DNA of 64,000 nt. It comes from Klebsormidium nitens. Lineage: Eukaryota > Plantae > Klebsormidiophyceae. Shown here in pieces: positions 8,212 through 42,400 of the stretch (position 1 is its first letter; every line of letters starts with the position of its first letter). A program made the position numbers and the translations under genes. The notes beneath the pieces are model-generated. The model saw only the letters and a program-made list of their open reading frames with translations, was not told the DNA's origin and did not search any database. The stretch covers positions 1 to 64,000 of the forward strand of contig DF237263.1 of the NCBI GenBank assembly GCA_000708835.1. The letters run 5' to 3'.

Positions 8212-9276
8212 TGTCTAGCGTGCCGACTTCTTACGTCCTTGCCGTGCGAGTTGCGAATACTACGTTTCAAAAAGGTCGATACAACCAAAAGACCTGGGCT
8301 TCAAAGAAGCTGTATTGAACGAACTCCTTTCTGACAGTTCAAGGTCATCCTGCGCTGGAAAAAAGACATGTAACGATCAAGTTTATTGGTGTGAAGCAGG
8401 GTTTGGCGTCGTGCTTATCGTAGTGCTGGCACTCACACGGGAAAGTCACAGTAACGAGACGCGACGTCGGCCAGGACAAAGCAGAACCTTGTGCAGAATT
8501 GCGATTGTAGTGCTGGCCGGACGCGCCGGCAACCGCCGTAAAAAGCGCTCGATCGATGAAGCGTCCTCTTTTGACAAAAATGGTGTCCAGCACCTCCAAG
8601 ATCTACTGCGAGCGCCGCAGGCTGTGCCGTCGTTACCGCCGCAACTTTCTCAATTTGAATTCACACCGTCCGACAAGCCGCAGCAGCGGCTTCACCTGAT
8701 TCCCCACAAACTTATGCCCGTGACGATACCTGAGATGTGGTTTGGTGCCGCCTCTATTAGGCAAGGCATGACGGCGGCATGCACACGGTGTGCATATGGC
8801 TTCACATACGATGTTCATAAAATCAAAGTTGTGCGCTTATACGTTGAGTCATTGTCATTGAGCTTGCCCGTTTCTTTTCAATTCAATCACGTACAGATCG
8901 AAGCAATATGCAATTAATGTGAGACGGTTCCTTGCAAGGAATCCGAAAGATGGATGATTTTACGGTACTAATTGATATATGCTTGGTATAAGTTCGATCA
9001 GTTGGTAGCGACGCTTAAGCGGCGGCACATATAAAGCACTCAGCGGTTAGCCTGTTCACATGCAGTTACTGAGCTATCTGATCTTTACGTCCAGAGCACC
9101 GTCCCGAGCGCCGGCGGTGCAACCGTCAGACGTCAACGGGGTCTAAGAAATTGGAGGTTAGTACGTCCGCCCTAGCGCTCCAATTGAACCGTTGCTCACA
9201 TTGAGCGCTTCGGGAAATGCAATCCCCGCGCGTACGTGCGGTATCTGTACATAATCAATAATGGACGTCGATCATT

Positions 9277-9475
9277 ATACCGATAACCCTCGTGTGACCT
9301 AACGGGCGTGTGACCTAAAATACGAGTCAACCGGGCACTTCAAACTAAAAACCTAACCCAGATAAACACTCGCTCCGCACCCCAACCCACCCTAACCACC
9401 ATACCAACCCCACCCGTCCCCCGGGTGCCTATCTTAGGTCACACGGCTCTTAGGTCACACGAGAGTTATCGGAGT
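9277..9475 (+). mobile_element. Non-autonomous TIR element (MITE-like), copy A; 39-bp inverted arms, 9-bp TSD, telomere-like core
   Basis: Left arm ccgataaccctcgtgtgacctaacgggcgtgtgacctaa (9280-9318) is the near-perfect reverse complement of 9434-9472. TCGATCATT occurs at 9268-9276 and 9476-9484. Core 9331-9425 is homologous to 10141-10236 (inverted) and 36112-36206. Confidence 0.85.
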
Positions 9476-10103
9476 TCGATCATTGACATGCTGGCAAACC
9501 CGCGTACGGTGAAGACGTGCCCCCTCATGCAGGTTTGACTGAGCCGCTATGAAGCTTCAACATATTTTGATCGGTCCCTAGGAGGGCTTGTAGTTACTTT
9601 GGTTGTGCAGCCGATCTCTAGGCCCTTTATATATTGGTCACTAGTGTTGTTGAGTATCATGCACGTGCGAGCGTGCTTCCAAGTCGCTGATTAGTCCTAC
9701 ATTATTCAGAGTTCTCTGCCGTAACAACACGTGTCGCCGTTCTACCTAGTCGAGCCAATTAACCTCCATAGAGATCGTGCACCCTCCGCGTTCTTGACTG
9801 TTCTCCCATCTGTCATCCACCTTCACAAACCGACCACCTATAATTTAAGCGCGCGCAATAAATATCGATACCCCTCTCTATCTACCTCTCGTGCACAATC
9901 GTGCACCGTTGTCTCTGCAGACGCGTCTCCATTCTCCGAGCTTTCAAAGCGGGCAAGGCGAGAAATTCGACTTTAATTCCTAGAAAAGTACTGATCTCCA
10001 CGGATGTATTGGAAGGACTGGTCCTGATGCGCGGGGCTCAGCATGTGAGGCGGCGGATACTGAACGGGTCTCCCAGCACTGCAAGAACGACATAGACCTT
10101 TAG

Positions 10104-10278
10104 TTTAGGTAGGATAGTTCTATGTAGGAGAAGGGCATGGCCCGGCGAACGGGTGGGGTTAGTTGGAGGGTAGGGTGGGTACACGTGCGGAGCGGGTTTA
10201 TTTGTCGGTTTAGGTTTTTAGTTTTGTTTCACCCGGGGACTGTTACTGAATAACATAGGAGATATCCTACGTCCTAAA
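10104..10278 (-). mobile_element. Same core-bearing element, copy C (inverted, degraded arms)
   Basis: Reverse complement of 10141-10236 (ccgggtgaaacaaaactaaaaacctaaaccgacaaataaacccgctccgcac...acccaccctaccctccaactaaccccacccgttcgccggg) aligns to the A and B cores. Imperfect inverted arms at 10104-10125 and 10253-10278. No TSD found. Confidence 0.65.
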
Positions 10279-10749
10279 TCTTGGGAGTATAAGAGCGACG
10301 GCGGTTGGCTGGTCAGGTCAACTTTTGATGCTGTCACGAACGAGGACGCGAAGACTTAACGCGCAGCAGTTTCAGTACGGCTTGCAAGCGTCGGCCGTGA
10401 CAGAAGAAGCTGTTTCAGCAACAAAGATGATTCGACCCAGTGCACTATCCTAGCTTTCAGGGTCGAGCGGAAACCCCGTCAACCAAAACGGTTTTTGAAG
10501 CAATTCGCAGTCAGAACCGAAGTGTCTCCTCCCCAGCTCTCCCAGTCGAGCGGCAAACCTTCTGAGAAGACAATCAACTTTTATAGCGAGCCGGGTTCAT
10601 CGATTCTGTTCTTCGAAGCAAGACAAAGGGACTTAGAAAAAGGTACCGGTACTTACACAGGGCTGACCGGCTGCCCGAGCACCGGGCTTTGGATCCCCGG
10701 GCTGTGTACCACGTGGGCTACCGACACGTGGGGCTGACGTCGTTTTGGG

Positions 10750-13700: not shown

Positions 13701-16700
13701 AGTTCTTGAGAGGAGGCTTTCCTATGGGGACGATAAGTGGGCTCCGAAGGAGTTGTGACACCTTTTGGAAATTCATCTTCTTACCAGGGTATTGCATCAA
13801 AAGCAACCGGACTACGAGCCGCTAAAGACGGTGGTTGTTTTGAAGAAATTAAGCGGAGCGCCTGCGTCTTCTGCTTGGTTCGATTACGAGAAACGTGCAA
13901 ATCGACGAGCCCTTTTGCAGTCGTCAACAGCACAGGCAATACAAATACATTTGTAGAATTTGCTGAGATGTGGCTTAAAGTACATCAGATCGCCGTCAAA
14001 ATGGTCACGTAGCAACGAAGGTGCAGAAGAGTCCGCACGCAATCCCTAAAACCCTAAGAACTCAAAATTTAGGACCAAAAATCTTAAAATCGCTACGGGA
14101 TCTCACCACATTATCTACACACTGCAACCAGGCCCCCGGTGCGACTTCGACGTACAGGGACGGCGGCGCTCCGCGTTTCCCCGGTACGCACCGCTGGGGG
14201 TAGCAACCCGCCGACTGCGCGTTGCTGTTGCCGACTTTTTTGATCCAGGGGTCGGAGCCGTGCTGGAAACACCTGCCCGGGGAAAGGTACGTACCGGTCA
14301 AAAGAGGGCTTGCGAGGATGTAATTGCTTTCTCATTGCCTCTGGAAATCTCTCTGGACGAGACTTAAAAAAGTAGACCAAAAGCCAAACCGCGAGCGCCA
14401 CCGCCGGAACCTTCTTTTGGCAGCTTCTCGCGCTTTATCAGTCGTGGCTACCGTTCATAAAGCTGGATTGAAGCTTCCCAAACTTGCGAAGATAATTAAG
14501 GCAGCTCGTGTAGGGTAACCCCCGTCTCCACGAAGTTGGATGCGTGGCCCGACTTGTTCGAAATGGCAGTCGTGATTGACACGCGACCCGATGAAAAACT
14601 TCGCCGGAAAAGGGCGCCCCCTTTTCCCGTTCGCGCAACGTTGCAGCTATCACTGCTCGGTACCGCTTCTCACGAGCAACTGTCCTGATTCAAAGAGAGA
14701 GCGTGCATGAAAGAGATCCACCTAAGTCGATTTTGACAACCTCACAGAAGACCTTACAAAACCTTTCAAGCAGATTACAATGTGCTCACCTCGACGCCGG
14801 CCCAAACTGCATCCCAACGGAGACTGCGTCCGTCTGCATCTGCCCTAACAACGGCGCCGTACAGCCGTAGTTATTCCATCCAATCACGCGCTGACACCCG
14901 TCGTCCGTACACGACCCCGAGTCCGTCGGCGAATCGCCGCACCCGTCGCAATAGCCGACCGCAATCGCGTCGTACGTGCACTGGTAGCCGGCCGCGCCGG
15001 AGCCGCCGGCCGCGCACTGGTACTCGGAGAAGACGGCCTGCCCCGCTGCAGGGGGTTTAGGAAGGGTTCAGGATTGAGGATATTCTGAAAGAGGATGACT
15101 TTGGTGAGTCTGTTTGGGTCAATTTGAAGAAGAAGTAGGCTGGGGAGGCGACAAAGCCAATGTCCTTATGTGCTTGGTTTGACTGGAATGCGAAATGGTT
15201 TGAAGTAGCTCAGCTTCCTGATATGGCCTCCTACCGATGCAATCGTTTTCGTTGGTTTCTCGTTTTGCAATTGTTCTGCTCATATTTCTGTTCTCATTCA
15301 GCGCCCATACCTCGAATCTAGCGCCTCCGCGCTCGCGAAATCGTGACTAAAAACCTGCCGCTCTCACCCGAAGAGGAGCACGACTTGTAGGCAAAGTCGC
15401 AGCCCTTGAGGCGGCCGAACCGCAGGAACATGCCCAGTCCGTAGTCCGGTGCGTACCACCCGCTGTCGTCCAGCAGCGCGAGCGTGACGTTGGAGTACGC
15501 CTGCGTGTTCACCTGCGACGCGCCCTCCTGCGGAGACGTGGACGTTCAGCTTAGTGTTCTGTCGATAGGGTTAAGGGATTCTTGTGCAAATTGACCCAAA
15601 AGTTGTCTTTGTCGTCGGTAATGCGCGAGCGTGATGTTGGAGTACGCCTGCGTGTTCACCTGCGACGCGCCCTCCTGCGGACGCGTGGAATCGTGTCAGA
15701 AGGGCGTCCGAGGTACAACTCTACGCCTGATTTAGCAAGTTCGTCTGATCCAGCAGCGCAATTCCTGAACTTGTTCGCGGCCGACGCCCCATCCTGTGTA
15801 TGGGTGTTAGTTCAGGGTTCAGGTATCGCGAGTGTCTAACTGCTGAAGAGCCAGCTCCAGATTGCGCTGAGCTGGTAAAGTGATCCATCCAGACGAGCCT
15901 GGAACGGGCATTGGAACACAGAGGTGGCAATGAAGACGACAGGCTCCTGACCATGATCTCTCCGTGCAGGATTCGCGCTTCCCAATGGCTCCCCGCCGTG
16001 CTAGGCCCGCCTCCGTTCTCGAGCTCGACTCCGTTCAGCTTGCTGCACCCGAAGTGTGCCCTGCCCATGGCGATCACCTGTGGCACGCAAAGGGACAGAT
16101 TAACATTTCAGGAAGACAGGAGAGGAGCGTTTTGTGGGAGAGCACGGTTGAAGAATGTTGTATCGGTCTGAGGAGCCGTTCTCTGAGCCACCGAGCAGCT
16201 TCGTGTGCCAAAGCAGATACGGGGCCGGGTCCCAGGTCCAAAAGTCCGGAGATCAATGGAAGTCAAGCAGGGTCACTGTGAAGACTTTCGGCCAGACTTG
16301 GGTCTGACGGTTTCCACCAATCTGGTGACGTCACCGGCCTTACCTGTGGCGTCACGATCTTGCGCACGGTCGTCCCCCGCTCTTGGAACGTCCCCACCAC
16401 GGCGCGGACGTCCGGCCCCTGCTCCGAGAAGTAGCGCGAGCTGTCGGGCCAGCCGCTGTCCGCGCGCGGGACGCGCGGGTCGCCGTTCTCGTCGCGGAAG
16501 TACGGGAACAAACTGTCGCTGAAGGCCAGGACGTGCGTCATCTCGTGGAGAGTTATCATCAACTGCAAGAGAAGTGGGTGAAAATGGTTGTCAAGATCTA
16601 TTCTTTGCGAAAAGCGAACCCGGGTCGACGCTCTCGTCGCAAAAATGTGGAAACAAACTGTCGCTGAAGGCCAGGACGTGGAGCGTGATATCAACTGCAA

Positions 16701-33400: not shown

Positions 33401-36400
33401 TAAAGAATGGTTGCACCCAGAAGCCCAGAGATTAAACCGCGATTCTTCGGGACTTTAAACCACCTTCGCGCCTCCGCAGGTGCTGGACGACTACAAGATT
33501 CTGTGCCTGCCCAACAGCGAATTCATCCAGATTGCGCCTCAACACTACAGTGTCAAAACTCTGAGATTCAAACCCCTAGTCAAACCCTCTTCTGAAGGTG
33601 AAATCAAAACTCTGATCCAATCTCAACTTCCTCCTCTGCAGGTGCTGGACGACAACAAGAAGCTGTGCCTGCCCAACAGCGAGATCATCCAGATGTCGTC
33701 ATCCATGAACATGATCTTCGAAGTGGGCGATCTCGCGGTCGCGTCGCCCGCGACCGTGTCGCGCTGCGGCATGGTTTACCTGGAACCGCACCAATTGGGC
33801 TGGCAGCCGCTAGTGGCGTCGTGGCTCCCAAACCTCCCTAACCCTCTGCTTAACCCGGAAACGCGCGCACACCTCCAGGGGCTGTTCGACTGGCTGGTAC
33901 CGCCGTGTCTAAGATTCCTGCGCAAGTCGGTGCGCGAGATAAGCCCGACGAGCGACGCGAACGTGGTGCGCGCGCTCATGCGCACTTTCGACGCGCTCGT
34001 GCGCGAGCTGCGCGACGAGGGCGCGGCCAAAACCCTAAACCCCGAGAAGCTCGCGCAGTGGGTCGACGGGCTGTTTTTATTCTCGCTGACGTGGTCAGTT
34101 GCGTGTACTGGGAATAACGAGGGGCGGGTCGGATTTGATAGGTTCATTCGCGAACTGGTCGGGGGAGGCGTTCCGGTCGGGTACGAGAGCTACGTTCCGG
34201 CGGTGCACGTTCCGTTCCAGTGTCCGGTGATACCGGCGGAACGGGGGGAGCTCATCTTTGATTACATGTTTGAAAAGGAAACGTGCAAGTGGAAACTTTG
34301 GACGGCCACGATTCTGAAGGAAGAGATTCCGGACAACGCGCAATTTAGCGAGATCATCATCCCGACCGCTGACAGCGCCCGCTATACGTTCCTGCTCGAT
34401 ACTGCGATCCAAGCCGGGTACCCGATCATTTTAGTGGGCCCTACGGGGACGGGCAAAAGCGTATACGTCAACCGCCACCTTATGAGCGGCCTGGCCAAAG
34501 ACAAGTATACGACGATGAACGTATGCTTCAGCGCGCGCACAACGGCGAACATGGTGCAAGCGCAGATTGATGGGCGACTTGACAAGCGGAAGAAAGGGGT
34601 GTTTGGGCCGCCGTTTGGGAAGCGGTGCGCGATCTTTGTGGACGATCTGAACATGCCGCAGCTGGAGGTCTACGGCGCGCAGCCGCCGATTGAGCTGCTG
34701 CGGCAGTTCATGGATCACGGTACGTACCGCTGTTTCCAAGGGTTGGATAGATCAGGATCCACTTCGTGTTCTCTGCTTCTTCTTTTCGGCTTTTGTGGGA
34801 TTCACGCTTTCTCAGGTTTGCTGATGGTTTACAATTCATAAGATATCTACGGCAAGATTACAGAGATCTGTCCCAGAAACGCTCACAAAGGCGGAGAACA
34901 TTTTGCATGCTGGATTCGTTGCGTCGGCTTTGAACCGGCACCGACAGGTAGCGCTTCTCTCCTGCCTATACTTAGGTCTTGCTACATATCGAGTGAGGAT
35001 CTCACTCCAAAAACTAAGCTCGGAAAGCGCTGCTCACACGATCCCGCCGTTTTTCGTACACGTAACATGTTTGGGGTGCTTCTCCTCGTCTCTCTCACCC
35101 TTCTTTTCGAAGAATACAATTTCCCCAAGCTTTCTCCAACTATCATTTTCAAATGGTGTTGAACCCAGAGGAAAAATCCCTAAAACCCTGGTTCCCTGCT
35201 CCTGGCAGACGGATGGTACGGCCGCGATAATGTGTTCCGCGACATGGTGGATGTCCAGTTCGTTGCGGCCATGGGGCCCGCGGGCGGCGGCCGCAATCCC
35301 GTCACCGTGCGCTACCTGCGACACTTCAACACCGTCGGAATGGCGCAGGTAAGGTTCTGTTGCCTACTTGAGTTTTTGCAAATCTTTCAAGATTCCAGAA
35401 AGGGGGCCGATATTTGACAGCAGCGCAAAGAAGCGGGCTCGGTTGTGTTGAAGATGCTCACATCAGAACAGAATAATGTAGAACTCCATAGCCGACTCAT
35501 CCTTTCAACGTTACAATTTTCTGGGGGCATCTTGCGGCTCCCGTGAAAGCTACTTGAAGGATCCTTTTCCCGATGCTTCGCTCAGATTAAGATCCAATCC
35601 TTTGAGTCCAGCCAGGCCAGACTTCAAGAATTGAGGTTATCGTTTCGCTTTTCAGGTGGCCGACTCGTCGCTGAGCGCCATCTTCTCGTCCATTCTGACG
35701 TGGCACCTCACGCGCGCGCCCTTCCCAACGGACGTCCGCAAGCTGTGCCCGTCCGTAATCGCGGCGACCATGGACGTGTACAACGCAGCCATGGCGTCGC
35801 TGCTCCCCACGCCCACCAAGAGCCACTACACTTTCAACCTGCGCGACTTTGCGCGCGTTATCCAGGTACGTATACGCGGGATTTTTGCACTCCATCGCTT
35901 TCAACCGAGAATGATTTTCCAGCAATTGAGACTGAATGTCGACTTTGAGTATGAAGGTCGAGGTTGACTTTCAAGAGTAAGCAGATGCCAAATTGAAAGT
36001 GCCCATTGCCCTCTAGTTGGTGCAAGGGTTCGGGTTTCGACCGTTTTGAACTTAGATCATCAAAAGATGTCTCTTCAATTTAGCAATAGTAAGCCCTAGC
36101 AATAGTAAGCTCCGGCACTAACACTAAAAACCTAACCTACAAAAACACCCGCTCCGCACCCGAACCCACCCTAACCCCCAAACTAACCCTACCCGTCCCA
36201 GGCTGGTGAGCTTACTATTGCTAAAGCTTACTATTGCTAAATTGAAGATTCTTCATCAAAAGCCCTTCCACGTAGAGAGCTTCCTAATTTTCAGTTGGCT
36301 CAACCTCACAAACAAAAATCCTTCAGTTTTCCAGTGGCATGAAGTCCTTTTGCTCTCACTTGGATTTTCATTAGTGCCGTGCTCGATTGTTTCTGGCGGA

Positions 36401-39400
36401 AACCGAATCTCCGCCACCTGTCTCTCCAGGGTATCATGCTCCAGCCGGCCGCGTCGCTCCCCGCGGCCGGCCCGCCGGCCGCCAAGTCGCACGTGCGGCT
36501 GTGGGCGCACGAGGTTTTGCGCGTCTTCTACGACCGCCTGGTAGATGACGTGGACCGCACGTGGCTGCTGACGCACATGAAGGAGATGGTCAAGAATCAC
36601 TTTGGGTTCGGGTTTGAGGACCTCTTTGGGCACCTCAGGCAAGGGGAGGGCGGGGAGATTGGCGCGCAAGAGATGCGGAGGTGAGACTTTGAGCGGACTC
36701 TCACTTGATCGTGGACGTTAGGAAGGGCTATACCTCGGACGGCATTGCGAACTTGCCGTACATGCTTGAACAAGTCTTCAACAGATATTGTTTGGTCTCC
36801 TTGTGATTCCTCTGTGATTCCGTAGCTGTAAGTTTAGGCGGTTACGGTGGGACAATCCCTTCTCAACTCCTTTTGTAGCTGATATCATCGCAAAAGACAT
36901 GCCCTCTTTCCTGATATCAACCGATAAAAGAAACTCCAGCGCCTAGTCCGCAGTGTCAGAGGCTCAACTCAAGCTGAATTATGCCCCAGTCGATGACCCA
37001 AAAAGGTGCACGCGCTCACACTCTCTGCGCGCGCGCAGGTGCTTCTTCGGCGACTACGCCGACTCGACCGCCGAGCCCGAAGCCCGGCAGTACCAGGAAG
37101 TGTCCGACGTCCCCAAACTGCTGACCACCATGGAAGAGTATCTCATGGATTTCAACGGTACCAGCAAGCGGCCGATGAACCTCGCGATCTTCCTGTTTGC
37201 GGTGGAGCACATTTCGCGCATATGCCGGCTCCTGAAGCAGCCGGGGGGGCATATGCTGCTGGTGGGAGTGGGGGGGTCGGGGCGGCAGAGCCTGACGCGG
37301 CTCGCGGCGCACATCGCGGGCATGGAGGTGCACCAGGTGAGGGTTTGGGGGGTTTAAGGCGCTTGCGGCCGCGGTGTTGAGGCGGCTTGTTCGCTTTGCG
37401 GGCTTTCTGTTATTTTGCGCTTCCAAGGGGCCTTGAATTTCCAGCAATGGCCGAACTGAGTGTTTTTAGAGTTTTCTTAAGAGTCCTTCTGTACAGCTGC
37501 CGTATTTGTCATCACAAAGAAGGTTCAGCTTTGAGATTTCCATCTCAACGTTTCTGGACATTCTGAAATTCCTAATCAAGGACGGCTCAAGTTAACCAGA
37601 GGATCGGAAGCTCTTTGGGTGTATTCAATCATCCATTTGCGGCTGCCGAACAGGCTAAAATCAAAAGCCCTTTGAGTCAATGCAGAGTATGAAGGCAAAC
37701 AAGAGGTTTTTCAGCGCTTGCTTAAGGCGAGATCCATACGTCTTGGTGGAGATCAGCTACAGGTGAGTTGCATCACTAAAGCTACCCAAATCCTCCACTA
37801 TCTAAAAGAGTCGAATTGCAAGTCCACATTGACACAGGTGGAGATCAGCAAGAGCTACACGTGAGTCGGATCAGGAAGCTGCCTGTTCCACTCACTTGCT
37901 CAGGAACTCAAACTGGAGTTTGAATTGACAGGTAGAGATTAGCAAGAGCTACACGCGCGTGGAGTGGCGCGAGGACCTGAAGAAGATGCTGCGGCGCGCG
38001 GGCGCGGAGGGCCACCCCGGGGTGTTCCTCTTCAGCGACACGCAGATCAAGGACGAGGCGTTCGTGGAGGACATCAATAACATCCTCAACTCGGGAGAGG
38101 TGAGAATGTTTCAAAGAGATCAGTCATGTGGCGAGCAGAAAACCAATACACGGTATTGGCGCAAAAGCCGTGTGCAAAACTTTAGAGATGATGCGTTTTT
38201 CGAAGCCTGCAGGTTTGCGATTTCTGCGGCTGACATAGCCTGGTTCTTCTTGCTTATGTTGGTTCAGTGCGCTAAGCTTCGACGCTTTGTTTGGCCATTC
38301 TCCCATCTTGAGATGGTGTGAGGAGATTGGAGGTGAGTTCTACATCCGTAGAGCTATGATCAATGGGGTATCAGAAAGAAGCTGCAAGGATATGGCTGTA
38401 TGGAACAGTATAACGCGTAACTTAAGAGCCAAGGACTTACATGCTTTACCTTGAATCTTTTCGGAACAGCGCACACTCAAAGCTCAATTTTTCAGTACCT
38501 TGCCTTCCTCCCAGGTGCCCAACATGTTCCCCAACGACGAGAAGGCCCAGGTGCTCGAGGCGGTGCGCCCGATCGCGGCCGCGCTCGGCAAAACCCTGGA
38601 AACCCCGACCGAGCTGTGGGCGTTCTTCACCGCCCAGTGCCAGCAGAAGCTGCACATCATGCTGTGCATGAGCCCGGTCGGAGACGCCTTCCGCGACCGG
38701 TTGAGGCAGTACCCGAGCCTCGTCAACTGCTGCACCATCGACTGGTTCCAGGTCCGTAAATCCCGCCAGCCAAAGGGCTCTTTATGGGCTTCTGCCTCTT
38801 GAAAGCTTCGCCCTGTAAAGTTTTACTCTTGTCTTGTCTTGTCTGAAATCATCAACGTCGGCTTTGAGGGTTGAATCTTTTCCCTATTTCATGGGTCTTG
38901 TTTCAGTGTAACTTGCTCCCTCCTACCGCTTTCTTGCCCAATTAGGTAGGCTTTACTCCTGACGATTTCCAGCGATTAATCGCGCGCAGAATAGCGCTGA
39001 CATCACCACTATTAACGGGATCAAAACTCTAGAACCGTAACGACATCCCTATAAGCTCCCTACCTATCAAACCAACAGATCTATCGAGCAGACGCGCTCG
39101 CCTTTACAAGCCAGCCCTTCAGAAGCCAGATTGGATTCCTTCAAAACCCTCCATAAACTTACTTTCAACCTTTCCGTGACCCTCCATAACGTCTCCTTAA
39201 CCCTCGCTTAACCCCGCAGGCCTGGCCCGAAGACGCGCTCGAGGCCGTCGCGCACAAGTTTTTGGGCGAGACGTCGGGGCTGGACCAGAAGATGCGTCCG
39301 GCGATCGTCCGCATCTGCAAGGCCTTCCACGAGAGCGTCCGGATCTACAGCGAGAAGTTTAAGCAGGACCTGGGCCGGCACAACTATCTGACGCCCACCA

Positions 39401-42400
39401 GTTACCTGGAGCTGCTGGCGACCTTCCAGAGCCTGCTGCAGGTAAAGGGTCGCCCTTCCTTTAGTCTTCGCACAACTGGTCGGTGATTAAAAGCGGTCAA
39501 GAGTTGATTCATTATGCTTCCAAGGGGACTTTCCTGAGTAGTCTGAAACGGTATCCACAGAAAGCGTTGCATCAATCAGACCCTCGAAAACCCTCCACTT
39601 TTTATTCACTTCGCTTACGTACACGACAAAACGATCCCTGGAGCAGGAATTCTGTGCAGCAATAAAAGCCCTTGCAACCAGGAATCCTGAGGAGAAACCG
39701 TTTTCTTCTGCGATTTGGCCGCGACCGCCCTGAGTTGCTTTACCCGATTTTCACCACAATCTGCAAAACAACTTTGAGATCAATGATAAGAAGAGTCAAG
39801 AAGCAAGCCTGGGTCTTCCATCCATTCTTCAGGCGAAGCAAGCGGAGAAGCTGAAGCTCAAGGGGCGGTACGAGGTGGGCCTGGAGAAGCTAAGCAGCAG
39901 CGCGGTCCAGGTGGCGCAGATGCAGGGCGAGCTCACGGACCTCAAGCCCAAGCTCATCCAAACGGTGCGTCGACTTGAGCATTTCGGTTTCCTTGGAGGT
40001 TATTGAGATCACTGCACTTTCTGTGATGCAATTTCGCAGAAGCCCTGAAAGGACTGTAGCCCCAAGCGCATTCAAACATGAAGGCGTCTTGAGCACCTCA
40101 GACCCCGCATAACCTTGTCAAGGGTGACGTCTGTGGTTCTTGAGCTTAGGAAGCCGGAAACGAAAGCTTTTCATTGAAATTACCATCTGCTTGTGCAGGT
40201 TCTCAGTTGCAAGGGGTTCAATTCCAGACCAATTTCGGGAATCGTAAAGCTCGCGAAGGTCTTTAACTGAAACCTCGTCCAGGAGAGCAACGCGAAAGTG
40301 TGAGAATCACCGGGGCAAGTGAGCAGCGCGACGAGGAGGACGTGTGCGCACGGGCTCAATTCATCACAGTGCTGCGACATTTCTAATCATAATGAACCCT
40401 AATCTGGCTCGCAGGTCGCGGGGCAAGTGTCCCAGCGCGACGAGGAAGACGCGAGCGAGCAGGCCGGGCATTTTGATAACCCGAATATGCGCGCATCAGT
40501 TCTGATCGAGCTCGCTTAAAAGATCTTGAATATGCTCGCAGGTCGCGGAATTCGAGGAGCTGATATCGCGCGTCGAGAAAGAGAAGCGCGAAATAGTACT
40601 TGAGCCGAAGAAAGCGATTGTGCAGCGCGACGAGGAAGACGCATACGCAAAGTCCTGGCAGAAATAATATAAACATAGAACTTGTTTTCAATCTGCAGGT
40701 GGCAGAAGTCGAAGAACTTATGGCGCGCGTCGAGAAAGAGAAGCGCGAAGTAGTAGAGCCCACAAAAGCGATCGTGCAGCGCGACGAGGAAGACGCGAGC
40801 GCGCAGGCCGCGCACTCTCACTTCGTACAGGAATCCTAAATACCGCGCACCCAAGCCCTTATTTTAACCGGTCGTTCAAGCCGGATTGCGCGCGCAGGTC
40901 GCGGAAGTCGAGGAGCTGATGGCGCGCGTCGAGAAAGAAAAGCGCGAAGTGGTCGAGCCCACAAAAGCGATCGTGCAGCGCGACGAGGAAGACGCGAGCG
41001 CGCAGGCCGCGGACGCGAAGGCGATCAAGGACGAGTGCGAGGGCGCGCTCGCGCTCGCGATGCCGATCCTGGAGGAAGCGCTCGCCGCTCTAGATACGCT
41101 CAGCCCGAACGATATTAATTACGTGAAGAAGCTGAGCAACCCCCCCGGAGCGGTGAAGCTGGTGATGGAGGCGGTGTGCGTCATCCTGGATGTGAAACCG
41201 GCGAAGGTGAGAGAGGTTTCAACTATCCGTGGAGAAAACCGTGAAGATAACCGCAGGGTATGGCCGTTGAAGTAGTAGACTATTCCGCACATACGCAGTG
41301 TACTGTGCACATACAGCTATTGAACATTTGTTTTCTCAAGAAATCAGCCACGATAATCGACATTTGTGGCATATCAGAACGAAACTGTTTGCCCATCTAA
41401 ACAGATTCTGATGCCTATCACAACGGCCATTTGGGTCTACTGTTGCCTTTTCGTTCCACCCCTTGCATTCAACCTTTAAAGAAATACGGCAATCTTACGT
41501 CCAGCATCAGGGTGCACAGGCAAGCGCGTCTAGATGCCATCTTTCCGAAAGCGACAGCTTTTCTCGACTTGCTTGTACTTACTTTCTTGAGTCCCTTTTC
41601 GCGGATTCCTAGAACCCGTTTTCGATTGCGTACGTCTCGCGCGCGCGCAGATCCCCGACGGCAAGGGCGGCTCCGTGCTCGACTACTGGAAGCCCAGCGT
41701 CGCGCTTCTGAACGACAAGGACTTTTTGGGCAACCTCAAGACGTACGACAAGGACAACATCAACCCCAAAATCATCGCGCGCATCCGAAAAGAGTACACG
41801 AGCAATCCGGAATTCACGCCGGAGCGCGCGGCGAACGCGAGCGCGGCCGCGGAGGGGCTGTGCAAGTGGGTGACGGCCATGGACAAGTACGACGCCGTCG
41901 CAAAGGTGCGCGCGCACGAGCTTGATTTGCTTTTGCTGGGAAAAACGTGTCGGGTAGTTATCCTCAATAGAGAGGTTTCAGAGTGAGTCCCGCCATTAGT
42001 GTTGTGGACTTTGCGGAGGGGCTGTGCAAGTGGGTGACGGCCGTGGACAAGTACGACGCCGGAGCGAAGGTGCGCGCGCGCGAGTTGCCTTTGGCTCTTT
42101 GCTGGAAAGAAGCATTTTGTTGTTTCCAGTAATTTCTCTAGAGTAAGCTGTTCAGGGCGGCTTGAATTGAAATTCACTTCGAATATTGGGTTGACCAGCT
42201 TCATTCAACTTACTCGGGTCAGTCGATGAGCCGCCTGAACGTCTCAGGTTGCAGGGTCCTACATCAGAGCTCTTGAAACCTCTTCGCAACCCAGATTCAG
42301 GCACAAGAAGCTGACGAGCGTTTCCGCAACGAAACTACAAGGCGCTTTGTTAGATTTGAACGGAAAAAGCGCAAAAACCGGAATTCAACTCAAATCTAGC

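Follow-up and report, generated by a model that had tools for sequence, protein, structure and literature searches.

Classical Foldback transposons (Drosophila FB, Arabidopsis FARE and Hairpin, and rice Tnr8) have modular arms of tandem sub-repeats, 9-bp target site duplications (TSDs), and mostly noncoding copies; they consist largely of their long arms and have variable loops. IR/DR Tc1-like transposons such as Sleeping Beauty carry two transposase-binding direct repeats at each end, and have a TA TSD, inverted repeats of ~230 bp, and one binding sequence per family. Tm1, a Mutator/Foldback family of root-knot nematodes, combines 9-bp TSDs (range, 8 to 10 bp) with asymmetric terminal motifs that are not inverted and lie external to the inverted repeat (sub-TIRs) (PMC3169594). 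The inverted repeats of Tm1 consist of 13- to 15-bp tandem units with a purine/G-rich inner motif, and the family includes MITE-like noncoding derivatives of a few hundred base pairs (PMC3169594). Foldback-like ends are convergent, as Galileo possesses them but is a member of the P superfamily (PMC3573991).

Here, we analyzed a 64-kb window of Klebsormidium nitens DNA (positions 1-64000 of contig DF237263.1), in which the record positions of GAQ86825.1, a dynein heavy chain of 4245 aa that maps to 21426-49095, coincide with window coordinates. Orthologous loci of relatives were fetched via the dynein exon ORFs, which yielded four contig sets of ~24, 41, 21, and 9 kb. Four copies of a genuine, well-defined family of noncoding, MITE-sized transposable elements were examined: A, B, and C in the K. 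nitens window and D in a sister taxon. The window copies are composed of the following features.

9268-9276, unstranded: left TSD of copy A, 9 bp; exact direct repeat of 9476-9484, not extendable on either side
9277-9475, plus strand: copy A, whole element, 199 nt; C-rich strand on plus, 3 non-inverted terminal nucleotides per end
9280-9322, plus strand: left arm of copy A, 43 nt; 8-nt outer module and 12-mer units at 9291-9302 and 9307-9318, with a 16-nt period
9323-9429, plus strand: core of copy A with short linkers and CCGGG borders; G4Hunter score of -1.9, the strongest of the window
9430-9472, plus strand: right arm of copy A, 43 nt; units at 9434-9445 and 9450-9461 on the minus strand
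9476-9484, unstranded: right TSD of copy A; exact repeat of 9268-9276
10083-10091, unstranded: left TSD of copy C, decayed; 8/9 match to 10291-10299, with ends predicted from homology to copy D
10092-10290, minus strand: copy C, whole element, 199 nt; an older copy in inverted orientation, with degenerate arms that retain significant inversion (p 0.003) and homology to the D arms
10138-10236, minus strand: core of copy C, located by the core pattern and nhmmer
10291-10299, unstranded: right TSD of copy C, decayed; 8/9 match to 10083-10091
36057-36066, unstranded: left TSD of copy B, 10 bp; exact direct repeat of 36253-36262
36067-36252, plus strand: copy B, whole element, 186 nt; within the 563-nt intron 35867-36429 of GAQ86825.1
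36072-36112, plus strand: left arm of copy B, 41 nt; outer module and 14-mer units at 36081-36094 and 36097-36110
36113-36207, plus strand: core of copy B; G4Hunter score of -1.6, second in the window
36208-36248, plus strand: right arm of copy B, 41 nt; units at 36210-36223 and 36226-36239 on the minus strand
36253-36262, unstranded: right TSD of copy B; exact repeat of 36057-36066

The arms of A (88% complementary over 43 nt) and B (95% over 41 nt) are the two best inverted repeats of the 64 kb. A few non-inverted nucleotides separate them from the TSDs, 3 at either end of A, and 5 and 4 at the two ends of B. Three of the TSDs are perfect (9, 10, and 9 bp in A, B, and D, respectively) and that of C matches at 8/9 positions; a direct repeat of at least 9 nt is found in only 0.066% (6.6e-4) of random segments with the same geometry. 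Seven of the eight element ends begin with A, five of them with AT. Folding as single-stranded DNA revealed free energies of -40.9 kcal/mol for A (z, -8.3) and -37.8 kcal/mol for B (z, -13.3), with the arms forming a very stable stem and the core left unstructured; the z score of C is only -1.3. The elements contain only short open frames, and a word search with the peptide of the frame that crosses the core produced no match to a known protein. Pfam scans of 25 window ORFs detected no transposase domain, nor was a transposase gene found in the fetched loci. A tRNA-derived (SINE-type) origin was discarded, as ARAGORN found nothing.

The ~95-nt core exhibits a strong C/G skew and is 72 to 84% identical among copies (79% between A and B, 84% between C and D). 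A core pattern of 24 positions, 20 of them specified bases, matches exactly three sites of the window (9371, 10171 on the minus strand, and 36150; 0.01 expected from shuffles), and an nhmmer profile of the core recovers the same three places with E values of 1e-20 to 1e-23. Bootstrapping of the core alignment (four copies) pairs A with B and C with D in 97% of replicates; for 4 to 5 sequences, the invariant columns form no runs beyond expectation. The core is predicted to be G4-prone, as A and B have in their cores the two strongest G4Hunter signals of the 64 kb and B, C, and D contain canonical G-quadruplex motifs. Its borders are the short palindromic CCGGG/CCCGG in A, C, and D, with only degenerate forms (CCGG and CCAGG) in B.

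In copy D, the gap for which the pattern allows 4 nt measures 5 nt, and the exact core pattern therefore under-detects. A metagenome search with this pattern returned one degenerate match without arms, and viral contigs and prokaryotic genomes contained none. The metagenomic stretch (L001, positions 998-1093 of contig QQTW01069123.1) is core-like (nhmmer E value, 3e-5), with nearly identical central 26 nt and neither inverted arms nor a TSD, and could represent either a solo core or a copy that has decayed in another alga. Should the core be a separate mobile sequence, or one repeatedly captured in the loops of unrelated foldback elements, its sharing among copies would be a secondary acquisition; the palindromes that bound it in A, C, and D and the armless L001 stretch speak for such a history. 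We nonetheless judge it distinctly unlikely, given that no duplication flanks the core inside the arms, that neither an arms-only element nor a solo core with its own TSD was present in the window or in the four contig sets of the relatives, and that all types share the same core place and arm geometry. Moreover, L001 is degenerate and was found by the core pattern itself.

Local alignment of the arms of A, B, and C to each other yielded scores equal to those of shuffled sequence (p 0.26 to 1.0), and the two arms within one element align at p ≤0.003. In both A and B each arm carries a doubled unit, a 12-mer and a 14-mer, respectively, each of which occurs exactly four times in the window (~0.2 expected each); the arms of C also contain a doubled unit, of ~15 nt. 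The A and B units are perfect at all four positions. All five arm-to-arm mismatches of A fall in the spacers, which comprise 12 of the 43 positions (p ~8e-4), and B has its two mismatches within the 2 nt that separate the units (of 41 positions; p ~1e-3). Spacer divergence is similar in copy D, which has 1 to 2 mismatches in or beside the units and one unit with a substitution. The units start ~15 and ~31 nt from the TSD-defined ends in A, B, and D, with a 16-nt period throughout, and their sequences are unrelated. A target-derived origin of the arms was also considered; the tip of the right arm of B resembles the left flank (16/21 bases), a similarity that neither A nor D shows and that was taken as chance.

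Confinement of the mismatches to the spacers, together with the fixed unit positions, fits four sequence-specific docking sites better than hairpin pairing alone. Pairing is what would matter if mobilization were structure dependent, i.e., if the G4-prone core with its CCGGG borders were required in cis and any self-complementary arm could serve as a hairpin or cruciform. Such a mechanism would accommodate the conservation of the core across unrelated arm types, its G4 signals, and the stability of the arm stems. It is nevertheless unlikely, since the inter-unit spacers are non-complementary while the units are perfect, a tandem repeat of one unit per arm is not required for pairing, the unit positions are fixed relative to the ends, and the C-type unit is kept in two taxa. 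The suggestion in the original prediction that the arms only need to be self-complementary is thus at odds with the distribution of mismatches in A and B. Its descriptive claims were borne out by the results above: a ~95-nt core shared by A, B, and C, mutually unrelated arms, a doubled 12- to 14-mer in each arm of A and B, and TSDs of 9 to 10 bp (Mutator/Foldback length) placed 3 to 5 nt from the arms. The family that it proposed, with a conserved core and nonhomologous arms of one design, is likewise supported.

Long, near-perfect stems with a large loop and arm sequences specific to each sub-family are also what dispersed small-RNA precursors (MITE-derived miRNA/siRNA hairpins) with arms selected for their targets would look like. 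Several observations render this explanation very improbable. An RNA-family origin was rejected, as the window had no Rfam 15 match at the gathering score and the 9200-10350 region had none even at E values up to 10. The arm units lack near-matches beyond chance in the 64 kb, with only chance near-matches elsewhere, at 2241 and 57063. The elements lie in both orientations with respect to the host gene, the sense strand being C-rich in B and G-rich in D. Non-complementary spacers and tandem units do not characterize miRNA stems, and the TSDs show mobility to be the cause of the dispersal.

The sister Klebsormidium taxon (Logan SRR23617307) has exons 93 to 96% identical to those of K. nitens. 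Its orthologue of the intron that hosts B is 313 nt long, versus 563 nt in K. nitens, and contains neither the core nor B. This taxon carries copy D (L010:11177-11376; 200 nt; perfect 9-bp TSD) in an intron of a Peptidase_M8 gene, flanked by the orthologues of window positions 14775 and 14314; K. nitens has no copy there. The flanking intron sequence at both B and D is too diverged for a base-exact empty site, with nonsignificant local alignment; judging from the sequences of the two loci, B and D are apparently two lineage-specific insertions. In SRR23617210, a second sample with the gene adjoining D, the contig ends before the D site, and no copy was detected in ~62 kb from two more distant Klebsormidium-like genomes (JGI metagenomes; 88 to 89% amino acid identity).

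Local alignment establishes homology between the arms of D and C (p<0.003), and C/D arms score at shuffle level against A and against B. The original prediction had assigned completely different arms to each copy and had treated C as not intact (10104-10278); copy D revises both points. Recurrence of the C-type arms in the sister taxon means that arms are heritable markers of sub-families rather than unique to each copy, and homology to D guides the ends of C, which is thus full length (10092-10290) with its 8/9 TSD. The non-inverted nucleotides at the ends of C and D have been conserved between the taxa and are therefore part of the element, not carried-over donor flank. Furthermore, C/D arms are alignable and A/B arms are not, even though A and B pair on the core just as C and D do. 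Arm differences thus represent replacement rather than gradual divergence, and the alternative that the arms are simply diverged but alignable failed. In the C/D sub-family (10092-10290 and L010:11177-11376), the arm unit shares 8 to 10 nt with a TTTAGG-like motif of its own core, and in D one arm has, in its outer unit, a 10-mer that is complementary to a core 10-mer (~0.02 expected). This arm type could derive from core sequence, or the resemblance could be due to chance.

Copies A and C lie just past the last region conserved with the Peptidase_M8 gene (minus strand) of the sister taxon, in what may be 3'-UTR or intergenic sequence. They are 616 nt apart in opposite orientations, so that their cores (9403-9425 and 10141-10163) pair as a 23-nt inverted repeat with a separation of 715 nt, a possible substrate for rearrangement. 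Another inverted pair, 15113-15134 and 15579-15600 (22 nt, 91% complementary, 444 nt apart), occurs in the Peptidase_M8 gene region, where it adjoins a duplicated exon fragment. No clear TSD flanks this 15113-15600 pair, and a core-like match inside it, at 15346, was shown to be unrelated to the core family. Short, partial copies of the starts or ends of neighboring exons populate adjoining introns of both the dynein and Peptidase_M8 genes (33476-33532, 40539-40642, 40696-40812, 42012-42077, 15623-15689, and 14976-15075), with one exon of a relative matching 2 to 3 places in K. nitens each time. An intron-like stretch contains a short telomere-like interstitial motif (CCCTAAAA type) at 14045-14057.

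We lean toward viewing the family as non-autonomous cut-and-paste DNA transposons of 186 to 200 nt on a Foldback/Mutator blueprint, whose sub-families combine a common core with differing docking-site cassettes. From the outside inward, an element consists of a 9- to 10-bp TSD, a few non-inverted terminal nucleotides, an arm with two tandem 12- to 14-bp units, and the shared ~95-nt G4-prone center. The four units, two per end, most likely serve as sequence-specific docking sites that are bound by the DNA-binding part of a transposase provided in trans, which would cut at a fixed distance outside these sites and insert the element with a 9- to 10-bp stagger. Each arm type represents a stably inherited sub-family, as exemplified by the C type in two taxa; the core would be common to all by descent, with new arm types arising by replacement of a whole docking-site cassette, not by gradual drift. 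We infer binding of the units by a transposase of the Mutator/Foldback type, a different specificity for each arm type, and the mode of cassette exchange; most simply, a single geometry of cleavage and binding would be combined with interchangeable binding sequences. As a counterpoint, three unrelated unit sequences would demand three DNA-binding specificities. In a bolder and rather doubtful proposal, the G4-prone core would be a selected cis module of a "universal" non-autonomous element, and four-site cassettes would be exchanged wholesale, letting a single parasite lineage shift to another transposase specificity; alternatively, the elements would track a transposase with a DNA-binding domain that shifts its specificity abruptly. 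Either version, if true, would constitute modular, swappable target recognition in a eukaryotic MITE.

This analysis newly provides copy D with the C arm type across taxa, the contrast of constrained units with free spacers, the conserved unit geometry, the full-length C, and the sister intron without B. A literature search found no published description of this family, nor of any Klebsormidium MITE. MITE families are usually recognized and classified by their ends, so standard annotation would overlook or subdivide a family in which replaceable end cassettes surround a constant core. Such a family would also offer a natural system for how non-autonomous elements gain transposase specificities and for what a conserved G-rich interior adds to transposition. 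Because these insertions occupy introns of conserved genes and are not the same in closely related Klebsormidium lineages, they are probably recent contributors to genome change in an alga that is used as a reference for land-plant origin.

The length (186 to 200 nt), noncoding nature, inverted ends, TSDs, and occurrence in several copies (four examined) are those of MITEs, the members of which share a terminal inverted repeat; here, by contrast, arm scores between types equal those of shuffles. Like the canonical plant MITEs Tourist, Stowaway, and mPing (see the review PMC5172404), these elements are small and noncoding, have inverted ends and TSDs, and reside in genes or introns. Those families are defined by conserved terminal repeats with variable interiors and have 2- to 3-bp TSDs, whereas here the conservation is reversed and the TSDs span 9 to 10 bp. 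The TSDs of ~9 bp are within the 8 to 11 bp required of Mutator/Foldback elements, and the terminal or sub-terminal inverted repeats (41 to 43 nt, 88 to 95% complementary) lie 3 to 5 nt inside the ends. TSD length and architecture thus suggest the Mutator/Foldback superfamily, an assignment that is provisional because no transposase was found in the window or the fetched loci and because Foldback-like ends also exist outside the Mutator superfamily, as in Galileo.

Of the systems described, Tm1 shares TSD length, terminal motifs, tandem-unit arms, an inner motif, and MITE-like size with the elements reported here, i.e., the same blueprint. It has a MULE-type autonomous member, whereas none was found here in the window or the fetched loci. 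Tm1 keeps its terminal motifs and repeat unit while its internal sequences vary; in K. nitens and its sister taxon, the core is kept and the units and terminal nucleotides vary by sub-family. Furthermore, arms have 1 to 9 units in Tm1 and always two here. Arms of sub-repeats, 9-bp TSDs, and noncoding copies are likewise shared with classical Foldback elements, and the tandem sub-repeats here are two units per arm with a period of 16 nt (A, B, and D) or ~15 nt (C). In Foldback families the arms are most of the element and their sequence defines the family, whereas here they amount to ~43% of each element, at only ~43 nt each, and a conserved loop of 95 to 107 nt is the family signature. The four sites per element, two per end, are reminiscent of Sleeping Beauty, from which the present elements differ by their 9- to 10-bp TSDs, their short arms, and several unit sequences in one family. 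Collectively, these comparisons portray the family as an unusual variation on the known Foldback/Mutator type rather than a new kind of system.
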